34,615 nt of DNA from Trichosphaerium sp. ATCC 40318. Lineage: Eukaryota > Protista > Tubulinea. Each line of letters begins with the position of its first letter. Position 1 is the stretch's first letter. Under the pieces are notes generated by a model. It was not told the DNA's origin, did no database searches, and was given only the letters and a program-made list of their open reading frames with translations. Below are positions 5,903 through 31,728 of this stretch, one piece after another. Where the stretch lies: assembly GCA_038496445.1 (NCBI GenBank), contig JALMLS010000012.1, positions 1 through 34,615 of the forward strand. The letters run 5' to 3'. A program made the translations under genes and the position numbers.

Positions 5903-6299
5903 TTTCAGCGCCCTAATAGGTGTTACACCGTAATTATTGACCTCATAGAGCGAATGGGGTCCTGATTGGGCTTATACAACGCAACAGTGCAAATGCGGAA
6001 AGGAGGTTCGAAACAAGCCAGTGTGTTACTACGTAAAGGGAAATACGCACCTGCCTTACTGATTTGAGTACTTTTCTGAAATTATACTTGTTGTGACACA
6101 ATGAAAATCATTGACTCTGTTTCTCTGCCCGGGCAATAAAAATGTCAAAGTTGAATCAACTCTAGAAAACTGACTCATGGAACTTTGCTTCTGTGCAAAA
6201 ACTGATGCAACACGTGTTAGTAAAATCAAACACACGGAACACAAATGACAGAGAAGAACTTTGTTTGTCTTTGTAAGGTGCGTTTTATTCGAAGTTTTC

Positions 6300-8485
6300 T
6301 TAAAATTCTACGTCATTTACAAATCTTCGTATCATATCATAAGCACGGCGAGGCTGTAGCAATCCAATTAGCACTTTATGTTGTATTTCAAAAAGGGAGA
6401 CAAGGTTATCACGTACTTGATCTTGTGGTACCAAATGTCCAGCATCTCTTACAACAACTTGAGTGAACTTGTTTACATTGCGAGCAAAACCAGCAACCTG
6501 TTGAAAAGGAAAAAAATAAGAACACATGTGACAACCATGTTAAGTTTTGTAATTTTTTTGTTCGTTCTTACCTCAACGTCTTTAGTATCTACTTTCCATA
6601 TCTTCTTTTGCGCTTTAACATAAGCTGCTCTTCCACTCCAGTTGAGTTGTCTCAAAAAATTCTCACAAACTGGTGCTGACAGGATGATATCATTTTGGCC
6701 GTTGTAGATAAGAACTTTGTAGTTTTCAAGCAAAGGTACTAGATAATCAGTAACGCTAACCATCCAATCGTTTACCAAAAACTTTTCAACTATTCGAGGA
6801 GTTAGGCAATCGAATGAATAATAATTAACTTTTTTTTGAGTTTAACTGTAGACTTACCAGATGAGTTGTATGGCTGAAAGCCGTATGTGCCAACGTGAAG
6901 AGCATCTTTGTTCTCTTGTTTTTGAAGGAATTTATCATATGGATTTGGAGGGTAGATTGGAGAGCGGATGTTGAAGTAATCAGCAGTGCCAGTGATGTTT
7001 CTAAAACAAAAAATAAGAATTCATATTCCACATGAAGACTAAGCGCCTATGTTGTGCTATAGGCACTAATTCAAACAAATATGATTCTTTCGTTTAGTTT
7101 ACCTGAAATACGGTGGGTACGGGTAAAAATCTCCGTTAATCATTTCATCAAAGACAAGGAACGCTTTGTAGAATTCCTTTTGTTTGATATGTACTTCAAT
7201 CTGTGCTTCATATTCTTGAATCTTTACCATTTCGTTGTAGTCTGCAATACCAGCCCAGAAAGCGAGTGTACCGAGGCCCTATTTAAGATAAAGTTAAGTT
7301 CAAAACGTTTTTTGTGGATTTCTTGTAGAAAAAAGCAAAATAAAACGTTACCTGTGTTTGTGTCAAAGGATCCATCATACCATCACCAATAGAGATACCC
7401 TTAAGGTTGATACGTTTTTTGGCGCTTGGGTTTTTAATATGGATAGTATAACCTGTAGCTGGTATATATTTTCCAGCATAAGACTCTCCTAGTGAAGAAA
7501 AAAGAAATCAGTGAAAAAAAAACTAAACGGTTTATTTGATTGTCCTAAATTTTTGTTTCTCGTTCTTGAGAGTATGCCAAAGTTTCATTGGTTGCGTAGA
7601 TAGTAAAACCCGTACCTGTGATATAGAAATCATTTGATCTGTAGTCCTCAAAAACTTCGAAAAATTGGTAGAGAGCTTCGTACCTAAAAAATCACACAAA
7701 ATGTCAGTAAAAGGATTTAAACGTGTCACTACGAGGTCTGACGTACAAGTTTGCGCCTACTTCTGCTTCGTTTGTGACAAATCCACTATCACTTCCAGTG
7801 AAACTGAATCCTAATACAGTACGGGTTAGATACAGCCACAAAAACTGACATGTTTTTATATTCACGCATAAATGTAGCGAAAGGTTGTTTAAAATGATTT
7901 GTACCAACACCAACTGGGTTATCAATGTATACAACGTTAAATTGTTTAGTCCAGGAGTATGGTTTTCCTGTTAGAGTAGTTGCATCAGCTTCTACTCTAA
8001 ATGGACCATTTTCGTTAAATAGACCGTCCAATGATGTGTAACCTGGACCGCCCTAGCGTGAAGGTGAGAAAAACCTTTTTTGGTGTCTTTCAAATTTGGA
8101 AAACATTTAGGACATTTCTTTGGCCTAATCGTTCGTACGTTTAGCCATAACAATACTGGCTTGTCTTGAGCGTTTTCGCATTCACAAGGAAAGAACCAAA
8201 AGAACATGTTGCTATCCGTTGTTGAGTTCACTGTAAAGTACCCAGAGTAACTCTCAATGCCTCCAAGCGTTACTTTACTGTATGAACATAATTAGGCGTT
8301 TAATATCACAAATACGCATACCTGAGAGATCTAGCGGTCGCAGCGTCATTTGGGAGGTATTGTGTGAGGAATAGTGGCTCCGAGGCAGCTAATACCGCGC
8401 CTGTATGTGTTATATTCGCGTTTAGGTTGTATTACGTACTCAGGGCGCACAAGCTAAGGAGAAAGGCGATAAGATGCGTCGCCAT
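6300..8485 (-). CDS. Secreted serine carboxypeptidase, peptidase family S10 (CPVL-like), many exons
   Basis: Signal MATHLIAFLLSLCAL. ESYSGYFTVN, MFFWFFP, PVLLWLN|GGPG, VVYIDNPVG, catalytic Ser in GESYAGKYIP, VLIYNGQNDII (Asp) and VRDAGHLVPQDQ (His). TAA at 6300. Confidence 0.93.
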
Positions 8486-11561: not shown

Positions 11562-11974
11562 TGGAACTTTCTTGTCAAAAAACAATATCTCTATGCGCTG
11601 AATAGCTAAAAGAGGATTTCCGATACTCCGAATAGTGTTAAACAACTTTAAACACACTGTAGAAACGCTACCTGCAAGTACAGCTCATAATGTTGAGAAT
11701 AAAAAAAACGGTTTGTGGTTCACACGTGTTTCATATTTTACAAGGTCTAAGTGCTTCAAACATGAACTTCTTGTAGAGGTAGGGTTTTTATGGCCTCTAA
11801 AGTGCAGTTGAACGAAGGTACGGAACCGAAAAACGCTAAATAATGAAAGATGTCTTCAATGGGTTTATACTCCTTCGGAATAGTACCACACTCATGTTTA
11901 CGCGTAAAATAAGATGCCAATCTACTTTAAGCTTCCCAATTAGCTCGTCTAATGTAAATTGTTGATAGATCCTA

Positions 11975-12830
11975 ATGAATGGCCTCGTTAGCTGGCGTAA
12001 TCATAGCTGTGCTTGGGATGCTGTATACACAGGTTTACAGTCTGTTGGTGATAACGTACATTTTTTGAAGCTGCAAGTGGATTTACACGTGCTAGGTGTT
12101 TCCTACTCTTTCAGTGCTTTTGAGAGATCCAAGCACAGAAAATAAAGAATTATTCATTAAACAGTTTTTGGCTGATCTCTATGAACGTTTTCCGAAGGAG
12201 AAAAAGAAGATTGAAGCGGCATATATCAAACAACGTTCTGGCATATATTCAACACTATTCAATGTTGATGCTGTTCATGAGTTTGTGCAACAACAATGTC
12301 TTGCTTTTCATGCGACCTATGAGTATGATGTACAATGCAACTGTGAAGGTATTGTGCCCATATTTATAGCTATAACATCGCATAGAATACCAAACAAAAC
12401 CTGTGTTTGTTTTTGCACCTAGAAGCGTCCAACACAATTTTGAAGAATGGGTAAACAAGAAAATTGGCAGAGCTTCAAACTGCAAAACATGTCGCTATGG
12501 TGGTTCCAAAGAAATCAAGGCATACAATATCTCAACATTACAGTGCTTACACAATTATAGGCTATTACTTTGCCGTTGTTACTTACAGTACTGCCAAAGA
12601 ATGATTTCAATAACATTCCAGAGTTGTTTATGCATAACAAACAGTACTAACATAATTATGGTTTCATTTAACTTTACATAGTGAGTGGAAAGCACAGTAC
12701 ATAATTATGTGGCAGCCAAATCCAAAACATTTTACATGTTACGTCAGCACCAACAGCGGTTGGTGGTTTGTGGATAACATGAAAAACCCAACTATTGGTG
12801 TTAAATCAAACCCATGTTTGTTTTTTTTGA
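11975..12830 (+). CDS. USP-fold (C19/USPL1-like) cysteine peptidase, intron-containing, possibly disrupted
   Basis: Cys box GLVSWRNHSCAWDAV (11981-12025) spliced in frame to ORF 12096. Finger Cys pairs CNC and CKTC. His box PKHFTCYVSTNSGWWFVDNM (~12722-12781). One junction near 12350-12420 cannot be put in frame by eye. Confidence 0.65.
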
Positions 12831-12841
12831 CAAATTAATAG

Positions 12842-13555
12842 TTGACAACTGTAGGGACAAATACAAAAGTGCATGGTGATGGGTGGAGAGTTCAGCGTGT
12901 AATATACAAATGTGATAATCCATATAAAGTCACTTTGGATGTCAAACATAGTCACAACATTCGCACCACCAAAAGAAGTACTATTCAAATAGACTTGCTT
13001 GATGAGCCCAACAGTTCTGATTCTATGTTTGTACCCACCAACAACAATAGCAATGAGCATGATGAGGCTTTTTCAGTTGAAAATAAAGAGACTGCTAAAG
13101 CTACAATATTTGTTCCTGGTCCAAAACACAAGAGCATTTCTATTGTTGTTGTACTTGGTAGACGAAGGGCCTTGTGGTTTGAAAAGGCTGTGTGTATTAT
13201 GACATTTTTCAATATAATAGCTAAGTTGTTCTAGGGCAATAGAAAGTGGATTGTACGGGTGAAGATGACAATTAGTAACAAAACTTGTGAACACGATATG
13301 TGGGAAATAGAAACAAAAGAAATAACTGGCTTTAAGAGAGCATTTAAAGAATGGAAAGCCCAGCAGGACACTGTTCTAGAAAAGCTTGCAAAAATAGGAA
13401 TAGGACACTGTAATAATCCTTCTCGTATGTATCTAACAACTAGGTTTTGCAGTGGATGCCCTATGTATCGGCAATGGGTTACAATTGATGGAAAAACAAA
13501 GCTTGTTACCATTCCACAGTTTTATTGTACAAAATGCTTTTACAAGTGCCACTAG
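12842..13555 (+). CDS. Further coding exons inside the TIR element, ending in a Cys-rich putative Zn-binding segment; either the C-terminal extension of the protease or a second gene
   Basis: ORFs 12842-13234 and 13259-13555 separated by an intron-like stretch ending TTCTAG. C-terminus HCNN...FCSGC...YCTKCFYKCH*. Confidence 0.4.
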
Positions 13556-14569
13556 ATTGTATACATTGGTATAGATAATATCCCATACTAAACACTTGTA
13601 TTTGGGGCTTCTGTAGTATAGGAGAAGCATTTTGTGTAACTGAGGAAGGCGGGTTACACCTAACTATTTGTTTTAGGTAGAATGCTGTTGTATTTAACTT
13701 CTCTACTTGTTTTGTGAGCCGTACTGAGGTGTTGTCTAAATGTGTTATGTACTTTCATGGTTTGTATCAACGGTAAAATAGCCTATGTGTGATTTGAGGT
13801 AACATTTGGCGAGATAACACAGCTTTTTGCTTTTTTTGCAAATGTAAAAAAAGGCTAACATCCATGCGCATTTGGATGCATATTTTTTGCATTTTCAGCA
13901 CCGCCAAAAACAGCACGGCAGCACTATAAAAGAACAGCGGAGTTGTTTCCGAACGGTTTTACTTCATTTCAGTGAGCTGGGCTTATTCAGCGCATAGAGA
14001 TATTAAGTGACAACAGTTGTGTTTTCTAAACACTAGTAGCTGCTCTTTTTACCCTTTAGTAGAGAATTTAAACGATTTGAACTGTAATGTTCCACAAGAA
14101 CGGACAAACAAAACGTGCGGTGTTTTGTATGAGATTGACAGTAATCCTTCACCGTGAAACATTGAAAAAAAAAACCCGACAAGCGAATAAACACGTGATA
14201 GCTGCTCCACAACCATAAATTGTTTCACCTCCTGTTCCAACTAACAACAAAGTGCAGCCAGTCAGTCTCTGCACTTTATAAAACAATAGCTGCTTTAACT
14301 ATTCTTTATCCATATTCTAGTAAGCGGCTATAATGTTCACAAAGTACGGGAAACATGAATTAAAAACCATTTTTCAGTGAGGTTTGCATGAGCAGTATTC
14401 CAATACAATGTCAATGTATGAAGGTGATTTATTCAAAATGAATTTACAAGTTTGTCTCAAGGTAACACTTGTCTCTATCAACGTAATATGGTACTCTGCA
14501 ACGTACGTGGTTCAAGTTTGTATCACAGCCTACTTCATAACCCATCGACAGCTTAACTTGGTCTGTTAC

Positions 14570-15516
14570 TTAACTCTTTAGTACGAACCCTTTAAGTGAC
14601 ATAATACCCTCACCTGTAATGTTATTACAACCTCTCAGGGAAATATAATTGACACCAGCCAGAGCCTTGATACCATCATCTGTGATTTGTTTACAATGTT
14701 CAAGCCAAATCTTGTGTACTCCAGCAAGTGCCCGTAACCCTTCATCTGTTATATTTGTACTATTTAGAACGATGGTGTTGATACTGGAAAGAGCTTTCAA
14801 CCCTTCATCTGTGATGTGCTTACAAGAATCAAGATAAATAGTATGAGTGGAAGCAAACGCTGTTAACCCTTCATCTGTTACACTTGTATCACCAAGATCA
14901 ATACTATGAACTCCAGTAAGAGCTTTTATCCCTTCATCTGAAATATTCTCACAGCCACACAGGTCTATGGTATGTACTCCAGCAAGCGCTTTTAACCCTT
15001 CATCTGATATACTTGTACAAGTGAGATCAATACTATGAACTCCAGAAAGCGGTTTTATCCCTTCATCTGAAATACTGTTACAGCCATACAGCGCAATGGT
15101 ATGTACTCCAACAAGTGCTTTTAAACCTTCATCTGTTACGTATGTATCACTGAGATCAATTTCACGAACACCAGCAAATACTTTGACAATAGAATCGGTA
15201 TTGGATAGCTCCCTCACTTTGATTTTTGTATGCTGGAGAGTACTTGAATGTTTTAAAACTGATTTTGCTTGCGAGATACTTGCAATACAAACGCTACTGT
15301 ATCCGATTGTATCATGAATGATAGATGCAAGCCGATGGCATGTTTGTGCCACTGCAAACCTCGCTTTTGTCGTTTGACGCAGAATATGTGCTAAAATCTC
15401 TGTAGGGAGGTCTAAAACGCTTTCTTGTGCACCTCTATAATGTTAGAATAGTTTATAGACTAATTAGCACGTGCTAAGTACCTTTGGTCTTTTACGTCCA
15501 GTCTGTTTGTTGTCAT
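14570..15516 (-). CDS. F-box + leucine-rich repeat protein (FBXL/AMN1-like), one 5' intron
   Basis: ATG 15516: MTTNRLDVKDQ|RGAQESVLDLPTEILAHILRQ...VAQTCHRL (F-box). Nine LRRs of consensus VHTIDLxxCxxITDEGLKALxG, with the DNA repeat CCTTCATCTG recurring. Confidence 0.88.
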
Positions 15517-16919: not shown

Positions 16920-17798
16920 TTACAACAACCATGTTTTAAAAGAGTTTGGTTCCAACTCAATGTATTCTATGCCCAATGTTTCAACGGATTCTTTCGTAAC
17001 ATAAATGCGTTTACCAACTTCAATAGTTCTTAGTGATGTTAAATATTCCAAACATGAGTCTGTGATGTTGGAACAATCGTCAATCCTTAGGTGTTCTACA
17101 TTAATTAAATGCTTCAAACCTTCATCTGTTATCCTGTGGCAATACACGAGATGTAATCTTTTTACTTTTCTCAACGATTTGATTCCGTAATCTGTGATTG
17201 ATGACCCATAAAAAATAGTAACTGTGTGAACGTTTCTTAGGTGCTTTAGCCATGAGTCTTGTGGTTCACGGAGGGTAATTTGGTGTACACGTGTTAGCGC
17301 TTTAATTCCGTTAACAGTAATGTTATGGCAACCAAAAAGGTTAATGGTGTGGACTCCAGTGAGTGCCTTTAGTGAAGCATCCGTAATATCTGAGTGTGCC
17401 AAGTCAAGATAGTAAAAGATATGTTTCCCTCCTTGTAATAACCGGAGAATACAAGCATCTGAACCGCTTGCTTTTTTTATACTTAGAGAGCGAACACCAT
17501 TAAGTAAAGCCAAGTCGCTCTCTGAAACGTCGTATGCTTCTGAGTGAGGGCCTTCTATAGTAGTGTTTTTGAGCAATGGGCTGAGTTTACCGCTGAGAAA
17601 GTGAACATCTGACGACAAGTTTTTTAATTTGATCCTATCAAGGCCAATAATGTACCGAATGATATCTTTGAAGCCATGAGAAACCTCAGAAGCCGTAATA
17701 CGATGGTTTCGGTTTAAATAACGTAAAATATGCGTTAACGTCTCTGGCGGTAAGGAGTGTTCGGTTTCTTTTATTTCTAATGGTCGTTTAGCTGACAT
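16920..17798 (-). CDS. Intronless F-box + LRR protein
   Basis: ATG 17798: MSAKRP...SLPPETLTHILRYL...ASEVSHGF (F-box), then LRRs (VHTINLFGCHNITVNGIKAL, LHLVYCHRITDEGLKHL). Paralog of 14570-15516. Confidence 0.88.
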   Translation of the reverse strand: MSAKRPLEIKETEHSLPPETLTHILRYLNRNHRITASEVSHGFKDIIRYIIGLDRIKLKNLSSDVHFLSGKLSPLLKNTTIEGPHSEAYDVSESDLALLNGVRSLSIKKASGSDACILRLLQGGKHIFYYLDLAHSDITDASLKALTGVHTINLFGCHNITVNGIKALTRVHQITLREPQDSWLKHLRNVHTVTIFYGSSITDYGIKSLRKVKRLHLVYCHRITDEGLKHLINVEHLRIDDCSNITDSCLEYLTSLRTIEVGKRIYVTKESVETLGIEYIELEPNSFKTWLL

Positions 17799-18131
17799 TA
17801 AATTGTGAACGATGGTAGATTGTGTCACGTGTTTAAAAAGTAATATTACTTCAATTGACCCAAACGGCAATGGTTCTCTTTATGTTTTTGACGTTCGAAA
17901 TTCTCTAGCTTGGATACATTGTTAAACAGGTCTATCTATTTCTCATCACGAACACAACAAGCTAAATAGCAAGATAGTTGGGCAGTCACTCCTCTCTACA
18001 TGGTCTTCTCGTTGTATATACAACATATTCGCTGTATAAGAACAAGGACATGGGCCTTAACTCACTGATGTAAGTACTTCTACTGAAGTTGTTCAGAGAA
18101 TAAGCTTTGTATTTTTCACAGCTTTTACAAC

Positions 18132-18615: not shown

Positions 18616-19196
18616 ACAAATTCCATGCTAATTGTTTTTCAATAAATAAAAATTCAGTTGTCTACAAAGAGTTGCGAAAACAATATCTGTGCAACCTCAT
18701 GTAAAATTTACGTGGTGAAGTAATGTAAAGTCTGATACTACATTTTATTACAAATCACGTGATAAAAAAACACACACGCGTGCGATTTACAACTACATCC
18801 ACAATAGGCGAGTGTATGTGGAAATACTGTATCATGGTCTGTGTAAGGTACACATACAGTTCGAAACGGTTTACAAACGTTCGAAAAAAGAAAAAAATGT
18901 TCGAAAAAATTGTTCGCAAAATCAAAAAGTTCGAAAAAACATTATAAAACACTGCAACCGACACTCGCAATACGTGAACTCAAAATTACGTACCAATTTC
19001 CTAAAACAAACGTTGCAGAGCTATCACGTGATAAAAAAGCCAAAAGGCACGTAAAAAGCTGTCGTATACGTTGTCATGTTGAGCGCTAACGGAACATTAA
19101 CAAATGCGCGTGAAAAACCACTTTCGATCAAGGAAATGTATTTGACTACCTCCGTCATATCTTTTTTCTTTGTCGGACTTATCAAGTTTGAGTTGG

Positions 19197-22100
19197 ATGA
19201 GTCGGGAGGTAGTTAGATTAACGCCTTTTTAATTCTCTTTTTTAGCAAAGTGAGGAAAACGGAAAACCAAGAAGTATAACATCTGCGGTTGCATATCATG
19301 TTACACCGAGACTTAAAAGGTATTGTTGTTACCAAGTCCTTAAATATAATAGTATTACCTAGCCGAACTGAAGAAACTTGGATCAGCACTGCGCAAGCTT
19401 AATCCTAATACTTCTATCTTGAGTAAATATTTTGATTTGAGACAGCTTAAGGATGTTGAGAAAATAACAACAGGTACAGTGTACACAGTTGTGTCCATTT
19501 ACGTTATTTGTAGTATACAAACTACAGAATCTATATAACGGAGAGACAGCCAATAAACTTCTACTTGTTTCAGGTTTGTTTATTAACATTAGTACATGTT
19601 AACCATCAATTTAGCTTATGCTGATTTGCCAAATATTAAATCGATGTGCTTACATGTGGGAGCAAATGCCAATGCTAAAGATAAATATGGACAAACAGCT
19701 TTACACAAAGCAGGTACTCTGATGTTCTTAATACAATGTATGCTCTAACACTTTTCAGCATTTTGTGGACGCCTCGAGGCTGTTATATTATTGCTCAATG
19801 CAAATGCAGATATAAGTGCTACAGACAAAGACGGCGAGACACCTTTACAAGTTGCTGGTACTGTTGTACATATAATGTATGTTCTATCTAACATGCTCCA
19901 GCTTTTTGTGGACACAAAGATATTGTCAATTTATTGATTGATAAAGATGCAAATGTCAATGCTACAGATAAGTATGGACAAACAGCTTTACACAAAGCAG
20001 GTACGTGATGAAAACATAAAATGTATGGTCTAACACATTCCAGCATGCCGTGGACACAATGATATTGTTGACTTATTGCTCAAGGCAGGTGCCAATGTAA
20101 ATGGTACAGACAACGACGGAGAGACAGCCTTGTACAAAGCAGGTACTTATTGCGTTGCAAATAGAGTACATGTTCTCACACTTCGCAGCATGCCGTGTAC
20201 ACTACGATACTGTCAAATTATTGATCGATGCAGATGCAAATGTCAATGCTACAAATGCACAAACAGCTTTAGACGTTGCTGGTACTGTAATGTAAAAAAA
20301 TGATGTTCTAACACCTTCCAGCATGCCGTGGAGACCATGATACCGTTAAGTTATTGATCAATGCACAAGTGAATATCAATGTTACAAACAAAGAAGGACA
20401 CAGCTTTATACCAATCAGGCACACGCACTGTAACAGTATATGTTCTAATACTTTACAGCGTTTTATGGGCACAATTACAGTGTTAAATTATTGATCAAAG
20501 CGAAAGCAGATATCAATGCTACAGATATAGATGAAGAAACAGCTTTACATGCTGCAGGTAGTAAATTGTAAATATACAATTTTTTTACACTTTCCAGCAT
20601 GCTGTGGACACGTTGATACTGCAAACTTATTGATTGCATCAAAAGCAAATATCGATGCTACCAATATACATGGACAAACTCCTTTACACAAAGCAGGTAC
20701 TGTTGTAAAATATACAATGTATGTTCTCACATTTTCCAGTATGCCAAGGACAACGATATTGTCAGATTATTGATCACAGCAAAAGCAAATATGAATGTTA
20801 AAGATAAAGATGGAGAGACAGCTTTACACAAAGCAGGCATGTGATGTAAATATACAACATATGTTCTAACACTTTCCAGTATGCCGTGAACACTATGATA
20901 CTGTTAAATTATTGATCGATGCAGATACAAATATTAATGCCACAAATAAGCATGGACACACAGCTTTGTACCAATCGGGTAATCTGTGTTGTAACAATGA
21001 ACATACTAAAACTTTCCAGCATTTTGTGGGTACAAAAGTATTATTGCATTATTGATCGGAGCGAATGCAAATGTCAATGCTGTGGACAAAGGTGGACAAA
21101 CAGCTCTACATGCTGCAGGTAGTAAATTGTAAAGTATGCAATGCTAACACGTTTCAGCATATAATGGACACGATGCTACTGCAAACTTACTGATCAATGC
21201 AAATGCAAATATCAATGCTATTAATAAACGTGAACAAACAGCTTTACATTTAACAGGTACCTGATGTAAATATACAAAGCAGTTTATAACACTTTCCAGC
21301 ATACTGTGGACACTACATTGTCGTTAAATTATTGATAAATGCAGATGCAAATGTCAATGCTAAAGATATAAATGGACAAACAGCTTTACACAAAGCAGAT
21401 ACTGTGATATAAATATAAAATGTTCTCACATGTTCCAGCATGCCGTGGACACAACAGTTCTGTTAAATTATTGCTCAAGGCAGATGCAAATGTCAATATT
21501 GCAGATAAAGATGGACAAACAGCTTTACATGTTTCTGGTATAAACATCAGTTGGAGTTACAAAATATCTTATACTTGTTAGTTGACTGTGATGACAGTAG
21601 AGTAGCGGAGCAGTTAATTAAACATGGCGCAAATGTTGAAGCACTAGACAATAAAGGATGGACACCTTTATTTTATGCAGGTTATACTACATTACCAACA
21701 CAAAGACTCTAACTATTAGTAGCACAATATAAATATTCTAAAGTGTTTCTCATCTTATCAAAAGCAAGTGATGTTTTTTCTCAGACCATGAGAGGACAGA
21801 AGTTTGATTTTAAATTTGTATTGAAAAAGGTGGTTGATAATGATCCTGCGTACACCAAAGTGTTTGAAACTCTTTTGACACACTTTCCAACCAATGGACA
21901 CACTCGTTCACTATGGGTTTCATGTGCACATATAAAGAGTGAGGAATATGTAAGGCTAGGTATTATATTTGCTGATGAATGGAGATGCAAGCTTGCAAAA
22001 TGGTTGCAATACTTGGTACAGCTTTAATTCAAAAAGTGTTGACTGATCATACACCAAGCCAACACGCTCTTATTTTAAGCTTGCAATGCAAAAAGGTATT

Positions 22101-24160
22101 TGCGCTCTAATCTGTACTTACAATCGCATATTTGTACAATCCTCGGTACCAACACATTTTGCATTCAAACAGTTTTAATTTCCTTGTTAGAGCTTTTGGG
22201 TTGAGCAAGGAGGACTAATGGAAGGTATTTTGTATGATTTACCAGATGATATGTGGAGTAAAAAAACAAGCCAAGTTCGGACCATTTATCAAATGTGTGA
22301 AGAAGAAGGCTGGTGTATAAACTCCATTCAACCAGATTTTAAACATTGTATGTGACGATAGTATAAAATCGCTGCTAACTGTTGCATAGCATTTAGGGAG
22401 TTTTATACATGCAACTATTGTGCTCAACACCAATATACAGGAAATGTTGTATGTCAATATATAACATTTTTTGTTTAATCTGTGGGTAGAAGCTTATTGC
22501 TGATCACCTCAAATGTAAGCGTGGTAAATATGCTATTCAGCCTATCACCCCAAATAGAGTATTATGTGATACTACAGCTGGTACAATCAATTGTCTCTGA
22601 CAACCATTTAAGTTTCATAACAGGACTAAAAAGTAAGACATCATGGAACTTAAATCCACGATTGGAGTATGCGTGCGGTTGGGATAGATCAAACAACAAG
22701 TGAGTTGTTCATCTTTTAACCTAACATTGTTTAATATTTTACAGAGGTTTTAATGAAAAAGCAACCCATTATAGAACATTGGACCTATTTGATGAGACTG
22801 ACACTGTAGCCAAACGAGAACTAAAGTTTCTTCATGAACAGATGTCAAAAATGCATGGATATGATCAAGTCACTGTTAAATCAGCATATCTTGTTTGCAA
22901 TGATGTCTTGCTTCAGAACTTTGGGATGTACAACACAATACTTAAACATAGGCACCAGTACGTACACAGTATACATGCACATGTTTTAGGAAATATTGAT
23001 TGTTACCTAGAGAACTACCAAAGTTATTTTGTAAGAATGATTGGAGGCGTGATGCCAATCAACGTACAAGTGTTTTTGATAAGTTTTTATCTTTGATACC
23101 CAGATCAACCAACAGCACAAAGGTACTACTATAGTAACAACAATAACTTGTGACTAATTGTTCAGTTACCTGTTGTGTTAATGGCACATGGAACACGTGC
23201 TGAAGCAGCATATAGTATTGTAAAAGCTGGATTTGGAACTGTAAGTGCATTGGATGCTGGATATTATGGACAAGGAATCTATTTTACAGTACTACTTAAT
23301 CATCACTTTGTTCTTGTTCTAATATGTTATTGTAGAGTAGTCTCACATATGCTTGTTCTTATGATAGCACCACTAAAGGCGGAAAAACACTGATTTTGAG
23401 TTTAGTTATACCTGGCAATGTGTATCCTGTACACACACATGGGTTCTATGTTTATTTACAATATTGGTAGGTAATTGAAAAACCTAGTGATGTTATCAAC
23501 TTTCAGGGTAAGCCTATTAAACCTGGGTACCAAAGTCATTATGCAGTGGTAAACAAAAAGGGAGAAGCTTTAAGCAACAATATTGATAAATGCAAATGGG
23601 ATGAGTTGGTTGTGGCTCAAGGTAAATAGTATCACGTGATGACAGGCCAGTGTTTTTTACTGTTAATTTAGATGTACAAGCTGTGGCACGATATGTCATT
23701 ACAGTTGTAAAGAAGCCAAGAAAACGGGTGACTCAAAAAAAAAGTAAGGCTACAAAAAAGAAATCAAACAAGCCAACGAAGACCAAGAGCATCAAAACAA
23801 TTGGAAGTGATAACATAGAAAACAAAGAGATTTTGAAATCAGAAGATGATAGCGAGTCAGATGAGTTGTCTGATGAAGATTCATTTATCACTAAACGGTA
23901 AGGCAATAACACTAAAATATCTTACTTATTTACTGTGAAGAAAATTATGGGCAGCTGCAAATCCAAATCAACCTGATCAACCATGCACACAAGACCAGCG
24001 TGTAATATCACTAAAAAAAGAAGTCACAAGGCTCAAACAAGAAAATAAAACCGTCCTTGACTGCAATGCCAAGCTGGAGGAAGACAAGGCACTATTGGAA
24101 GAAGAAATTGCCAAACTACTTGCCCAAATTGCAAGTCTCAAGAGCAATGTGAGCTCATAA
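19197..24160 (+). CDS. Ankyrin-repeat + PARP-like ADP-ribosyltransferase, copy 1 (15 ankyrin exons); lesions in the 5' part, catalytic part intact
   Basis: Ankyrin exons 19615-21680. Catalytic exons PVVLMAHGT...AGYYGQGIYFT|SSLTYACSY...LVIPGNVYP|...GYQSHY...WDELVVAQ give an H-Y-E triad. Lys-rich, acidic and coiled-coil tail; TAA 24158-24160. Frameshift near 19300 and in two ankyrin exons. Confidence 0.85.
19615..21680 (+). repeat. Tandem array of 15 exon+intron units (~140 bp period), one ankyrin repeat per phase-1 exon
   Basis: Exon starts: 19615, 19759, 19902, 20044, 20189, 20322, 20459, 20598, 20740, 20880, 21020, 21158, 21300, 21439, 21582. Twelve are 99 nt, one is 93 nt, two are 97 nt. 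Introns are 39-46 nt and mutually similar (GTAC....TGTTCTAACACTTTCCAG). Confidence 0.93.
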
Positions 24161-24425: not shown

Positions 24426-25292
24426 TCATTGTTTTGGAACAAAGATAACTGCCAAATCCTCGTTCTCTCCATAGTACATTATACCAAATAAAACATATAT
24501 TTCAATGTCAGCAGATATCCATTTAGATGCTAGTTCTGGGTATTTGCTTAGAGCTTTCATAGTATCATTAAAACACTCTCCAATACAACTTAAACATTCT
24601 TCATTTTCTTCATAATGATCACGTACATCATCAATTCGAAATAAGTTAGCTGCACTATAGTAGTACCCAGAACCTCCCCCACAAATAGGCAGAGCTACCA
24701 GCGGACATCTCAAATAGTAACATTTAGGACAGTATACTCTGAGGTCCGGTTTGTACACGCACATACAATCCTTTGTGGGCTTTCTACAAACATCACATGT
24801 TTTGGGGCGAGAATCTACAAATTCAAACTCGTGGTTTGGTTCAGGCAAAGAATAGTCGATATCGCTAAGGTTGTCAAGGTCTTCTAATGCAGTTTCGTAA
24901 TGTTCGTATTTTGCCCAACGGATAACGTGAGATACAGCCAAGTCCCACAATGACTCTTTCGGTCCTTCATCATTTTCAACTGAAAAAAATAAAACATCTT
25001 CTTGTAACACGTGCGTTATTATCCTTTCTTTAATTTCTTCCGTGTTTTCATCATGAATTACTTCAAGTACAGAGATATCCTTTAAAAGGCGTGTTTTACC
25101 ACATGGCATACCAGAAATGATGTTGCGAAAGTGCTTGTTTGTTGATTTGAGCTTTACAATGCGCTTTACGTCTGTATAAAGCAGAATTTTGATTATCTCG
25201 CCTAAAATGTCAGTAACAAGAAGAGCTTGTGGTGTTTGATGTTTTTATATTGTCGACTGTTTTTCTTCTCGCAGTTGTTTATTTAGACTCAT
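24426..25292 (-). CDS. Intronless F-box-like protein with Cys-rich (Zn-binding) C-terminal region; one in-frame TAA near the 5' end
   Basis: ORF 24426-25109 extends in frame through LVTDILGEIIKILL...KLKSTNKHFRNII (F-box-like) to ATG 25292, interrupted only by TAA at 25245-25247. CDVC, CMC, CPKC and CLSC motifs. Confidence 0.65.
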
Positions 25293-25426
25293 ACTTGTAA
25301 ATGACACGTGCTGCTCGACGTGATATTGACAACTACACAGGGTCAAATAAATTAATCACGTGACACAAACAACTCGCCTTCCAAAAATAATCACTTATTA
25401 TAAGTTTTTGACTGTACAAAGCAATT

Positions 25427-25537: not shown

Positions 25538-26051
25538 AACTCTAGTCATTCACCAAAAATACAAGGTTATGAAGAACGAGCTATCAAAGAGCAAAAGAGA
25601 AGAAAAGCAGCTTGAACTTTCATTTTGAATGTACACTTTTTTTAGCTGCTTTTTTTTTTGACTAAACCCAGATTTTAGGTAGCCGTTGTGGGATTGGTAC
25701 GCTTTTGAATAGAGAATTTTTCTCTAAGCAGTTGATGAAAAAGTAAAAAATGTGTCAGTCACGCAGCAGTCAGCTACTCACCTGAAACTGCCGTATGCGA
25801 TAGGTTAAGGTTTGTATTTCAAGGGGAAGATCTTAACAGAGATGCACAATAAGTACATTATATGCAATTATCATAGGAAATATGTGCCTTGCTCTTTTCA
25901 GTAAAAAAGGAACTTTTAATTCCTTATTTAAGAGCAACAACACCTTTTTCTGTCAAATGAATAGGCCAGATCTGCTTAAACAGTAATTTACTACTTATTC
26001 CTGATATGAGGCCGCAAACAACGCCGTTTAGAAAACAATTTTGTTCACTAT

Positions 26052-26150
26052 CTTATGCAACATCCCAAACAGCCAAAAATGATGCATACACACTACACGT
26101 GCATGTTGAATACAATACATCATTTTTGGCTGTTTGGGATGTTGCATAAG
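26052..26150. repeat. 99-bp foldback: perfect 33-bp inverted repeat around a 33-nt spacer (MITE remnant or hairpin RNA)
   Basis: CTTATGCAACATCCCAAACAGCCAAAAATGATG (26052-26084) is the exact reverse complement of 26118-26150. Confidence 0.9.
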
Positions 26151-26646
26151 TTAGAAAGAGGAAAAAAACTGTAGACTTTTTTTTGAAAAAGGGCACTACA
26201 ACAAATGAAAAGCGGTTAGCTCGGTTTTGTATCGCTAATCAAGAGCAATAAGCTGAACTTGACGTTTTTTGCGGAGCCACGACTAACGTTTTAGTGTGCA
26301 CACTCAGGGTCGATGCACTACTACTCTTTATACACTTTCTAGGTATAAATGATGAACAAAAAAGAACCTAGCTAGAAGATTTTCACATTTTACAATAACG
26401 TCATACCTTAAAAACAGTAAAACGTATTTATTTTTTCTCACGGCTACAGGTTTATATTAAACTCTCATACTTACTGTGTAGATTCAAAGCATGCAGTGCT
26501 TACACCACAGCACATTCAACTGCTTAGCGAAAAATTCTCTATTTGGGCTTTACGGCAAGAACAATCTTATAAAAACTGTACTGATAGACAGGAACGACTT
26601 TTAAAAACAGACAAATTTATGGAAGGGAAGCTTGGTACTTTATTGA

Positions 26647-27287: not shown

Positions 27288-27703
27288 CTATCCACATGAA
27301 AAAGGTATTGTAAGCGTGTCTTGTAAGTATCAATGTATTTGAGTAAACTTAACCAGTTTTAAAAGACTTGTCTTCATTTTGTGATAAGCTATGACATTCT
27401 GTTGAAGAAAATTCCAAATTCTTATGAGCTCAATCTCAGCTGTCCAAACTGTCGCTGTCAAAGGGAGTACAATTCCTTTAGGGTATTTTTCCGATTTTCC
27501 AAAGGTACATGGGCTTTGAGGTACCAGGTAATTTTGTTACATTACTAAGAAGGCTATTAATGTAATACACTCAGACAGAATTCTCAACTCGTTCCTGTTT
27601 AGCATGAGGTCAAAGACAAGCACCAGATTTTGTTTATTGTTGTAGAATATTGTCTGTTGTAGTCAAGCAACAATGCTTTGATTTGAATTTGTTACTTACA
27701 AGC

Positions 27704-28030
27704 ATGAGTCTAAATGAACAACTGCTAGAAGAAAAACAATCGACAAGCGATATACAGTATCAAACATCACAGGCGCTCTTGTTAGAACAGCTAATCAAAA
27801 TTCTGCTTATACAGACGTAAAGAGCATTGTGCAGTCAACAAACAAACACTTTCGTACTGTTGCTTCTGCTATGGTATGTGGTAAGAGATGTTTTAAAGGG
27901 TATCTATGTACTCGAAGCAATCCATAAAAACAAAGAAATTAAACAATCACGCACGTGCTACTAGAATTTCATTGACAAAGGAATAAAAGAGTCGTTGTGG
28001 TACATGGTGTATCACACATTATATGTTGTA
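27704..28030 (+). pseudogene. Truncated, frameshifted inverted copy of the F-box-like gene 24426-25292
   Basis: ATGAGTCTAAATGAACAACTG... aligns with the start at 25292. Shared ATCAAAATTCTGCTT, TATACAGACGTAAAG and AAAGAGTC-TTGTGG. Multiple deletions; abuts the 3' end of ankyrin-PARP copy 2. Confidence 0.85.
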
Positions 28031-28044
28031 CATTTCAAAAACAG

Positions 28045-31000
28045 CTATGAGCTATCGTTACTCTCAAGACTTGCAATTCGGGCTAGTAGTTTAGCAATTT
28101 GATTGCATTGGTTGGCATTTTCTTCGTTCAGTTTAGCATTGTCTTCCTCCAGTTTAGTGATTCTGGTATTTGATTCCTCAATGATAGTTGTGTTTTCTTG
28201 TTTGAGCTTTGTGACTTCTTGTTTTAGTGATAGTACACGCTGGTCTTGTATACATGGCTCATCAGGTTGATCCAGCGTTGCGGCTGCCCATAATTTTCTT
28301 CACAGTAAATAAGTAAGACATTTAGTATTGTGTAGTCTTACCGTTTAGTGATAAATGAGTCTTCATCAAACAGCTCTTCTGACTCGCTATCATATTCTGA
28401 TTTTGAAAACTCTTTGCTTTCTATGTTTTCTACAATTTCACTTCCAATTGGTTTGATAATCTTGGCCTTCTTTGGTTTGTTTGATTTCTTCTTTTTTCCT
28501 TCACTTTTTTTCTGAGCCACCCGTTTTCTTGGCTTTTTTACAACACTTATGATATATCGTGCCACAGCTTGTACATCTAAATTAAACAATTAAAAAATAC
28601 TTTGTTACACCTCATGGTATTATTTACCTTGAGCCACAACCAACTCGTCCCATTTGCATTTATCAATATTGTCACTTACAGCTTCTCCCTTTTTGTTTAC
28701 CACTGCATAATGACTTTGGTACCCAGGTTTAATAGGCTTACCCTGAAAGTTGATAACATCACTAGGTTTTTCAATTACCTACCAATATTGTAAATAAACA
28801 TAGAACCCATGTGTGTGTACAGGATACACATTGCCAGGTGTAACTAAACTCAAAATCAGAATTTTGTCACCTTTAGCGGTGGTATCATAAGAACAAGCAT
28901 ATTCAAGACTACTCTACAATAACATATTAGAACAAATGCAAAGTGATGATTAAATAGTACTGTAAAATAGATTCCTTGTCCATAATATCCAGCATCCAAT
29001 GCACTTACAGTTCCAAATCCAGCTTTTACAATGCTGTGTGCTGCTTCAGCACGTGTTCCATGTGCCATTAACACAACAGGTAACTGAAAATTAGTCACAA
29101 GTTATTATTATTACTACAATGTACCTCTGTGCTGTTGGTTGATCTGGGTATCAAAGATAAAAACTTATCAAAAACACTTGTCCGTTGATCATGGCTCCAA
29201 TCATTCTTACAAAATAACTTTGGTAGTTCTCTAGGTAACAATCAATATTTCCTAAAACATGTGCATGTACTGTGTACGTACTGGTGCCTATGCTTCAGTA
29301 TTGTGTTGTACATCCCAAAGTTCTGAAGCAAGACATCATTGCAAACAAGATATGCTGATTTAACAGTGACTTGATCATATCCATGCATTTTAGACATCTG
29401 TTCATGAAGAAACTTTAATTCTCTTTTGGCTACAGTGTCAGTCTCATCAAAAAGGTCCAATGTTCTGTAATGGGTTGCTTTTTCAATAAAACCCCTTCCA
29501 AAATGGTTAATGAAATTAAAGGCACTAAAACTCAACTTGTTGTTTGATCTATCCCAGCCGTGTGCATACTCTAATCGTGGGTTTAAGTCCCATGATGTCT
29601 TACTTGTTAACCCTTGTTTAAAATCAACTGGTTGGTAAAAACGGTATTGTACCAACATTAGTGCCCATTAATAGTGTATTTGGTCTAATGGGCTGAATAG
29701 CATATGTACCATGTTTACATTCGAGATGTACGTCATCAATAAGTTTCTACCACAAGTTAAAAAAGATTAAACAAACTGACATGCAATATGTTCTTTATCT
29801 TTGTTTTCAGAACAATAGCTGCATATGTAATGCTCTGTAAACCCTATACAACAATAAACAACAATATTCACTATTAGCACTTACGCTTTGGGTTATCTGG
29901 TTGAATAGAGTTTATACACCACCCTTCTTCTGTGCACATTTGATAAATGGTCTGAATTTGGCTTGTTTTTTTACTCCACATATCATCTGGTAAATCGTAC
30001 AAAATACCTTCCATTAGTCCTCCTTGCTCAACCCAAAATCTCTATTGATGAAATTAGCACTTGAACTTAAAAATGTATTGGTACCGGGGATTGTACAAAT
30101 ATGCGATTGTAAGTACAAATTAAAGTGCAAATACCTTTTTGCATTGCAAGCTTAAAATAAGAGCGTGTTGGCTTGGTGTAGAATTAGTCAACACTTTGAA
30201 TAAAAGCTGTACCAAGTACTGTAACCATTTTGCAAGCTTATATTTCCATCCATGACTTTTTATATATGTCCATGATAGCCACAGCTGTTGTTGATTTGTT
30301 GGAAAGTGTGCCAAAAGAGTTTCAAACACTTTGGTGTATGCAGGATCATTATCAACCACCTTTTTTGCTACAGATTTAAAATCAAAGTTATGTCCTCTCA
30401 TGGTCTGAGAAAAAACAAAACTTGCTTTTGATAAGATGAGAAACACTTCAGCATTTCTATGTTGAGCTACTAATAGTCAGGTTCTTTGTGTTTTGGTAAT
30501 GTAATTTAGTGTTAAACTTGCACACCTGCATAAAATAAAGGCGTCCATCCTTTATTGTCTACTGCTTCAATATTAGCACCCGAAAACAGTAATTGTCTAG
30601 CTGTTTTGCTGTCACCATATTCAACTAGCAAGTGTAAGATAATTTTAAACTCCAAGATGTTATGACCAGCAATATGTAAAGAGGTGTGTCCATATTTATC
30701 AGTAGCATTGACATTTGCTTTCACATTGATTAATAACATAATAGTATTAGTGTGCCCATGGCATACTGGAAAGTGTGAGAACATATATTTCATATATACA
30801 CCATAATACCTGCTTTGTGTAAAGCTGTCTGGCCACAGGTATCTCTAGCATTGACATTTGCATTTGCGTTGAGCAATAAATTGACTATATTGTTGTGTCC
30901 ACAGCATACTGAAAAGTGAGAGAACGTATTTCACATTTATAACAATACCTGCTTTGTGTAAAGCTGTCTCTCCATCTTTGTCTGTATCATTGACATTTGC

Positions 31001-31728
31001 ATTTGCAAAGAGCAATAATTTAGCAACATCATTGTGTCCACAAAATGCTGTAAAGTGAGACCATGTACATTATATATTTACAATATTGTACCTGCTTTGT
31101 GTAAAGCTGTCTCTCCATATGTATCTCTAGCATTGACATTTGCATTTGCATTTATCAATAAATTAACGACAATGTAGTGTCCACAGTATGCTGCACAGTG
31201 TTAAAATACTTTGTATATTTACATCAGGTACCTGTTAAATGTAAAGCTGTCTGTTCATGTTTATTTGTAGCATTGATGTTTACACCAGCATTTATCAAGA
31301 ACATAGCGGTCTGAAAGTCTCCACAACATGCTGTAAAAAGTCAGAATGTACATTTGATATTTATAAATACACTGAGTGAAAAACATTTACAGTACCTGCT
31401 TTATGTAAGGCTCCATTTTTACTATCTGTGTCTGTAGTATCATTGTGTCCATGGCATGCTGAAAAATGTTAGAACATATGTTGTATACTTACTATACAAT
31501 ACCTGCTTTGTGTAAAGCTGTTTGTCCATACTTATCTGTAGCATTGACATTTGATCCAAGGTTCTTCAGTTTGGCTAGGTATTATTATTAATAGCGATAC
31601 CTTTTAAGTCTCTAATATTCTCTTGGCCTTACGTATCATGATATGTAACCGCAGATGCTATACTTCTTGGTTTTCCGTTTTCCGCACTTTGCTAAAAAAG
31701 GCGTTAATCTAACTACCTCCCCACTCAT
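28045..31728 (-). CDS. Ankyrin-repeat + PARP-like ADP-ribosyltransferase, copy 2 (8 ankyrin-module exons); early in-frame TAA
   Basis: ATG 31728 (MSGE|QSAENGKP), TAA at 31629-31631 in exon 2. Ankyrin exons 30526-31574. PVVLMAHGTRAEAAHSIVKAGF...GYYGQGIYFT...WDELVVAQ. TAG 28045-28047. Confidence 0.85.

Follow-up and report, generated by a model that had tools for sequence, protein, structure and literature searches.

The stretch of DNA considered here (34,615 nucleotides of Trichosphaerium sp. ATCC 40318, contig JALMLS010000012.1; "the window" in what follows) carries two related genes, gene A (19197–24160, + strand) and paralog B (28045–31728, − strand), lying tail-to-tail, inverted and 4 kb apart; in both, an array of ankyrin repeats with one repeat per exon precedes a PARP-type ADP-ribosyltransferase (ART) domain. 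The GC content of the window is about 37%. The two genes belong to a real and apparently undescribed family of ankyrin-array PARPs: no paper was found in the literature on this family or on the clade to which its ART belongs, and nothing was found on a one-ankyrin-per-exon gene structure. The published Trichosphaerium genome has a GC content of 37.69%, with which the GC content and the short introns of the window agree, and the main text of that paper mentions neither ankyrin nor PARP (PMC10521059).

Organization of gene A and paralog B

Gene A was modelled as a spliced gene; it was searched one exon at a time, and the joined exons were used for the counts of stops and substitutions. Its 5' exons (19197–19208, 19246–19273, 19311–19319, 19363–19473 and 19514–19573, + strand) encode an N-terminus of 73 amino acids, whose ATG at 19197 is usable only via an inferred micro-exon of 9 nt, present in paralog B too; the piece of this N-terminus which was tested has no Pfam match. 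The ankyrin array follows at 19615–21680 (+), where exon mapping yields 15 modules, one per exon, with phase-1 introns of 39–46 nt, and where Tandem Repeats Finder reports a 142-bp period across 19662–21529. This modular arrangement, proposed in a first-pass annotation made from the DNA letters, is retained here with the correction that the exon length of 99 nt applies to 12 of the 15 modules; module 5 (20189–20281, +), for instance, measures 93 nt, a 6-nt deletion having kept the frame. Modules 1 and 15 are the divergent end repeats, and both of the modules searched against Pfam, 3 and 15, match Ank. The repeat unit, exon plus intron, spans 133–145 bp, of which about 70% is exonic. Since the array introns are more alike (mean identity 69%) than the other introns of gene A (56%; 0 of 20000 permutations as high), the duplicated unit is the exon together with its intron, about 140 bp, as the same annotation had held.

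Downstream, 13 exons (21720–24160) join without stops into 634 amino acids, in the layout already recognized at first pass: a middle region, a PARP-type domain with intact H-Y-E residues, and a basic, acidic and coiled-coil tail. The middle region (three exons, 21720–22347, +), in which no Pfam domain was found, is family-specific and is kept in the spliced homologues P0002 and P0003 and in L001, a 45%-GC contig from a diverged amoeba. It is followed by a degenerate Cys/His segment (22390–22580, +); at the same position L001 and L002 carry a Cys/His-rich, zinc-finger-like motif, while P0002 and P0003 are without it. The finger of L001 is UBR-box-like by eye only, zf-UBR identity of its exon finding no support in Pfam, PDB or Atlas; the motif is interrupted by an intron, and several ligands are missing in A and B. 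The ratio of nonsynonymous to synonymous substitutions (dN/dS) of exon 22390–22448 between A and B reaches 1.15 over 20 codons, as expected if selection is relaxed on what would be a decaying finger, and positive selection on this exon was not accepted.

The ART domain occupies six exons (22745–23700, +), with His at 23187–23189, Tyr at 23280–23282 and Glu at 23603–23605; these codons are intact in A, and the motifs are the same in B. Pfam PARP matches exon 23166–23288 with an E value of 2e-4, under the curated cut-off for this piece of 41 amino acids. Matches of the exon at 23166 to TALE were rejected, being sums of repeat matches of 1–3 bits each. The tail (23672–24160, +) runs from a Lys-rich through an acidic to a coiled-coil part, and ends with the stop at 24158–24160. 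No transmembrane stretch was found in the 3' parts of A and B, and no Rfam match was obtained; SAM gave no match in the middle exons tested nor in P0002 and P0003, short exons reducing the sensitivity of this search, and NACHT/NB-ARC gave no Pfam match in the exons tested nor in the homologues.

Paralog B was modelled as an open frame of 893 amino acids with eight ankyrin modules, two of them partial; the model requires two introns of 25–26 nt, plus either a GC donor or an intron of 26 nt. At its 5' end (31503–31728, −) the introns of the model are 25 and 26 nt long, against 37 and 43 nt in A; should they not be spliced, either B starts elsewhere than assigned or it is itself damaged. The 3' parts of A and B share 82% amino acid identity with an overall dN/dS of 0.39, and the values of the core ART exons (0.03, 0.15 and 0.23) indicate purifying selection. 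The flank upstream of A (18908–19160, +) was duplicated along with the gene (82% to 32229–31957), and the downstream flank (24916–25306) matches 28028–27690. Two introns of the ART region (listed segments 23011–23122, 22958–23010 and 23429–23470) do not differ at all between A and B (100% identity, against about 70% for those of the middle region), which suggests that the catalytic region may recently have undergone gene conversion. Between the two genes lies an open reading frame (ORF) of 227 amino acids (24426–25109, −), partly duplicated at 27690–28028, for which no homologue was found; near B, the segment 26564–26967/32507–32829 forms an inverted duplication (81–85%) containing a gene fragment that is cold-shock/zinc-knuckle-like by eye only.

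The enzyme domain and its relatives

The catalytic exon (23166–23291) matches 230 cluster representatives, and the exons of A fit the profile of the clade. The nearest relatives are intron-less proteins of JGI contigs and MMETSP transcripts, colinear with A and continuous across its 3' exon junctions; one spliced homologue comes from Trichosphaerium sp. ATCC 40318. The multigene family supposed at first pass is borne out by these spliced, transcribed relatives; as none of the spliced homologues exceeds 85% identity across an entire ART exon, what is shown is expression of the family, not expression of A or B. The array organization recurs in L003, a spliced contig of a relative, in which the same middle region and ART are preceded by an unbroken run of six or more 99-nt ankyrin repeats and are separated from it by a scaffold gap and a stop; L001 shares the layout and the intron positions, its ankyrins being diverged and encoded one per exon. 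In a quick tree of the ART, the nearest relatives of A form a branch of their own with 100% SH-aLRT support. The metagenome search returned only relatives at 29–48%. A viral or plasmid origin was considered and rejected, no plasmid match and no exact viral DNA match having been obtained; the sole IMG/VR locus matched lacks a long ORF across the matching region and is for this reason read as probably intron-containing eukaryotic DNA.

That the domain folds as an ART, as the first pass had assumed, agrees with the AlphaFold2 model of the ART of P0003, which was built on an alignment of 78 sequences and reaches a predicted local distance difference test score (pLDDT) of 91; its top Foldseek matches are PARP1, tankyrase and PARP12 (E 4e-11 for PARP1 and TNKS). 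P0003 is 51–85% identical to A over the main ART exons and 32% identical over one, and the fold evidence is that of the homologue rather than A's own; a single-sequence fold of P0002 reaches a pLDDT of 45. Across the 78 homologues the triad is largely kept (Tyr in 78/78, Glu in 77/78, His in 70/78). Against PDB, the clade profile matches best ZAP/PARP13, PARP12 and PARP10 (E 2e-7 to 2e-5), and also PARP4, no tankyrase being present among its matches at E ≤ 1e-3. By modelled fold and H-Y-E residues, the enzyme domain is a PARP-type (ARTD) ART, for which NAD+-dependent activity is predicted.

The clade, whose consensus reads LSSLDAGYYGxGIYF, occurs in Mastigamoeba, Copromyxa, Nolandella, Pyxidicula, Arcella and Trichosphaerium, and its other members carry LRR, Roc-COR, EGF, FG-GAP or ANK-SH3 N-termini. 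Because it sits behind so many different N-terminal modules, it is suggested that this ART serves receptor-like proteins of the Amoebozoa as a general output domain. In two Roc-COR proteins, P0112 and P0056, an ART of this clade replaces a kinase.

Array change, the state of gene A and its surroundings

The identity among modules is low (median 71% in nucleotides; about 50% in amino acids across those 15 inner modules of the two arrays that are intact), the maximum internal repeat identity being 69% in A and 78% in B. The variable paralogs expected at first pass were recovered as far as the number (15 modules in A, 8 in B) and order of the modules are concerned; the cassette-wise shuffling expected with them was not. 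A13/B4 and A15/B8 pair at 95–100% support and A14/B7 by position and intron, and nothing in A corresponds by position to B5 and B6; B1 is an N-terminal exon fused to mid-repeat, B2 carries an internal deletion, B3 agrees with A12 along its 3' half (90% identity) and not along its 5' half, and A5 and A10 are 90% identical in their 5' halves, the likeness being limited to these. All the recombination junctions seen in the two arrays thus fall within exons, which argues for unequal crossing-over or conversion, and against the shuffling of exon cassettes, as the process that would explain the differences between the arrays; inverted repeat exons were not seen in either array. The symmetry of the exons would then be a consequence of duplicating a unit with one intron, and as such no evidence of cassette shuffling.

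The diversification of the ankyrin binding face, which the first pass had implied, did not emerge either. In the same 15 modules, entropy at DARPin binding positions exceeds that of random positions (p=0.016) but not that of other surface positions (p=0.44, at low power), most of the highly variable columns being found where the outer helix begins; dN/dS at the binding positions is 0.31–0.41, with no positive selection, by simple counting on near-saturated sequences, a test of low power. A pattern of homogenised repeats variable at the binding face is absent from the arrays of A and B.

Nor is gene A, as assembled, the intact 15-module gene of the first-pass annotation. Modules 6 (20322–20418, +) and 9 (20740–20836, +) measure 97 nt each, 2 nt having been lost in both from an AC run; both are frameshifted and followed by a GC donor, whereas module 13 (21300–21398, +) keeps its 99 nt and has an AT donor, retention of its intron leading to a stop. 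Neither of the two GC donors reads GCACGTG, a point of little weight, since the model of B also calls for a GC donor departing from this form, or else for a 26-nt intron. When every exon is spliced, the first stop falls at amino acid 278, upstream of the enzyme domain; for the frame to stay open as far as the enzyme, either modules 6 and 9 must be left out of the transcript or splicing must resort to cryptic donors, and skipping of the two, with or without 13, leaves it open down to the natural stop. The chance of finding both frameshifted exons among the three with non-GT donors is 0.03, and no frameshift occurs in 3.8 kb of other coding DNA of A and B, despite 23 ACAC sites and 11 homopolymers of at least 6. 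Because of this coincidence and of the frameshift-free coding DNA nearby, the three lesions, as read in the assembled sequence, are more likely real than errors of assembly.

On balance, A and B are probably members of an expanded intracellular family of ankyrin-array ARTs which evolves by duplication and death, A being a decaying or shortened copy. In such proteins the ankyrin stack would bind a protein partner inside the cell, as the lack of a transmembrane stretch in the 3' parts would allow, and the C-terminal PARP-fold domain, given its fold and intact H-Y-E, would use NAD+ to ADP-ribosylate this partner or itself. The arrays would grow by tandem duplication of the unit of about 140 bp with its one intron and be remodelled by homologous recombination (unequal crossing-over or conversion), in which the frame is preserved whenever a crossover is in register, while whole genes would duplicate and die. 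Gene A is an old array with three broken modules, probably either decaying or giving a shorter product, and of the two genes B is the more likely to be functional; a role of the family in conflict with intracellular invaders is plausible. Several observations weigh against this account. The 3' exons of A are still intact and constrained, so that any decay must be recent or partial; the lesions of gene A are read, and its splicing predicted, from the assembled genome; and both frameshifts are contractions of AC runs, also a typical long-read error, the published Trichosphaerium assembly, probable source of the window, being a Nanopore/PacBio one polished with Illumina reads (PMC10521059).

These last points lend themselves to the alternative that all three lesions are errors of assembly and A an intact gene of 15 repeats; the long-read assembly was moreover made from amplified DNA (PMC10521059), and the repeat arrays of a large family polish poorly. 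The lesions coincide, however, with donor changes of the substitution type, the modules are only 60–81% alike, so that short reads should map uniquely, and the neighbouring coding DNA is as clean as described above; this alternative is accordingly considered improbable.

It is about equally doubtful that A is a working variable receptor, which would skip modules 6, 9 and 13 as inactivated exons and, by including its symmetric exons in different combinations, present several binding surfaces on one enzyme. The open frame left by skipping, the non-GT donors of all three lesioned exons and the constraint on the 3' exons of A speak in its favour, as does the report of inactivated repeat exons and splice variants in the ROCO genes of Ectocarpus (PMC3341825; PMC11378527). 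The selection signal on the binding face is, however, absent, and the only spliced array seen, that of L003, consists of consecutive 99-nt repeats and is uninformative on skipping. In genomes with short introns, a weak donor mostly leads to intron retention rather than to skipping; with introns of about 43 nt, retention is expected in gene A, and at module 13 it yields a stop. The broader proposal that the ankyrin-array PARPs of Trichosphaerium are diversified pathogen sensors on an NAD+-consuming effector, with A keeping skipped inactivated exons and with splicing and recombination varying the binding surface, is likewise held to be unlikely.

Least probable of all is a housekeeping, tankyrase-like scaffold PARP which tags cellular substrates for turnover and owes its expansion to a duplication-prone genome rather than to conflict: ankyrin–PARP fusions have arisen several times in eukaryotes (PMC4245714), the A/B locus gives no positive selection and the diverged repeats of L001 look stable, but repeat number changes rapidly between neighbouring paralogs, the clade is joined to many receptor-like N-termini (LRR, Roc-COR, EGF, FG-GAP, ANK-SH3), and by profile it comes closest to ZAP/PARP13, PARP12 and PARP10.

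Little is settled about the way in which free-living amoebae recognize giant viruses or intracellular bacteria, and recombining repeat arrays on a PARP-type enzyme represent a testable candidate. The A/B locus is a weak example of a variable receptor; what it reveals is the mode of array change, with junctions within exons and with symmetric exons that are no evidence of cassette shuffling, and the three lesioned modules of A offer a clean test case of exon skipping versus intron retention.

Elsewhere in the window, ORFs with a PIN domain and a BTB domain lie at 1169–1759 and 2069–2542 (−), an element at 11584–14004 is flanked by perfect 21-bp inverted repeats, and long LRR ORFs occupy 14570–15352 and 16920–17870 (−), one of them with an F-box and the first with a 66/129-nt tandem array whose repeats are intron-free. 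An imperfect palindrome of 108 bp at 26048–26154 resembles a miniature inverted-repeat transposable element, and CACGTG occurs 27 times in the whole window against 5.75 expected. In L001, a gene neighbouring the homologous one contains a 72-nt tandem array (6186–6513).

Comparison with known systems

Like gene A, the tankyrases (TNKS1/2, PARP5) join N-terminal ankyrins to a C-terminal H-Y-E ART of PARP fold. The combination ANK+SAM+ART, which defines them, has been reported from animals and choanoflagellates only (PMC9688111); in the exons of A that were tested SAM was undetected, in line with the distinction from tankyrases drawn at first pass, the repeat number varies between A and B, and in structural alignment the ART of the homologue is 15–18% identical. 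With SAM undetected and the ART not orthologous, gene A, as judged from its sequence, is not a tankyrase.

The ROCO-LRR and NB-ARC-TPR genes of brown algae share with A and B the arrangement of one repeat per symmetric exon, the variable number of exons, the inactivated repeat exons and the clustering of paralogs (PMC3341825, PMC11378527). They differ in their modules, LRR or TPR with Roc-COR or NB-ARC in the algae, ankyrin with ART here, and in the positive selection acting on their ligand-binding face, which has no counterpart in the A/B values given above, obtained at low power. Fungal NLRs with ANK repeats of high internal conservation likewise combine an ankyrin array, a repeat number driven by recombination and a joined effector (PMC4986451); their criterion of internal identity is at least 85%, whereas A and B reach at most 69–78%, NACHT/NB-ARC was not found in the latter and no selection on the binding face was seen. 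PARP10, PARP12 and PARP13 (ZAP), finally, are the best PDB matches of the clade profile; no WWE, CCCH or macro domain was seen here, and the catalytic Glu is kept in 77 of the 78 homologues.

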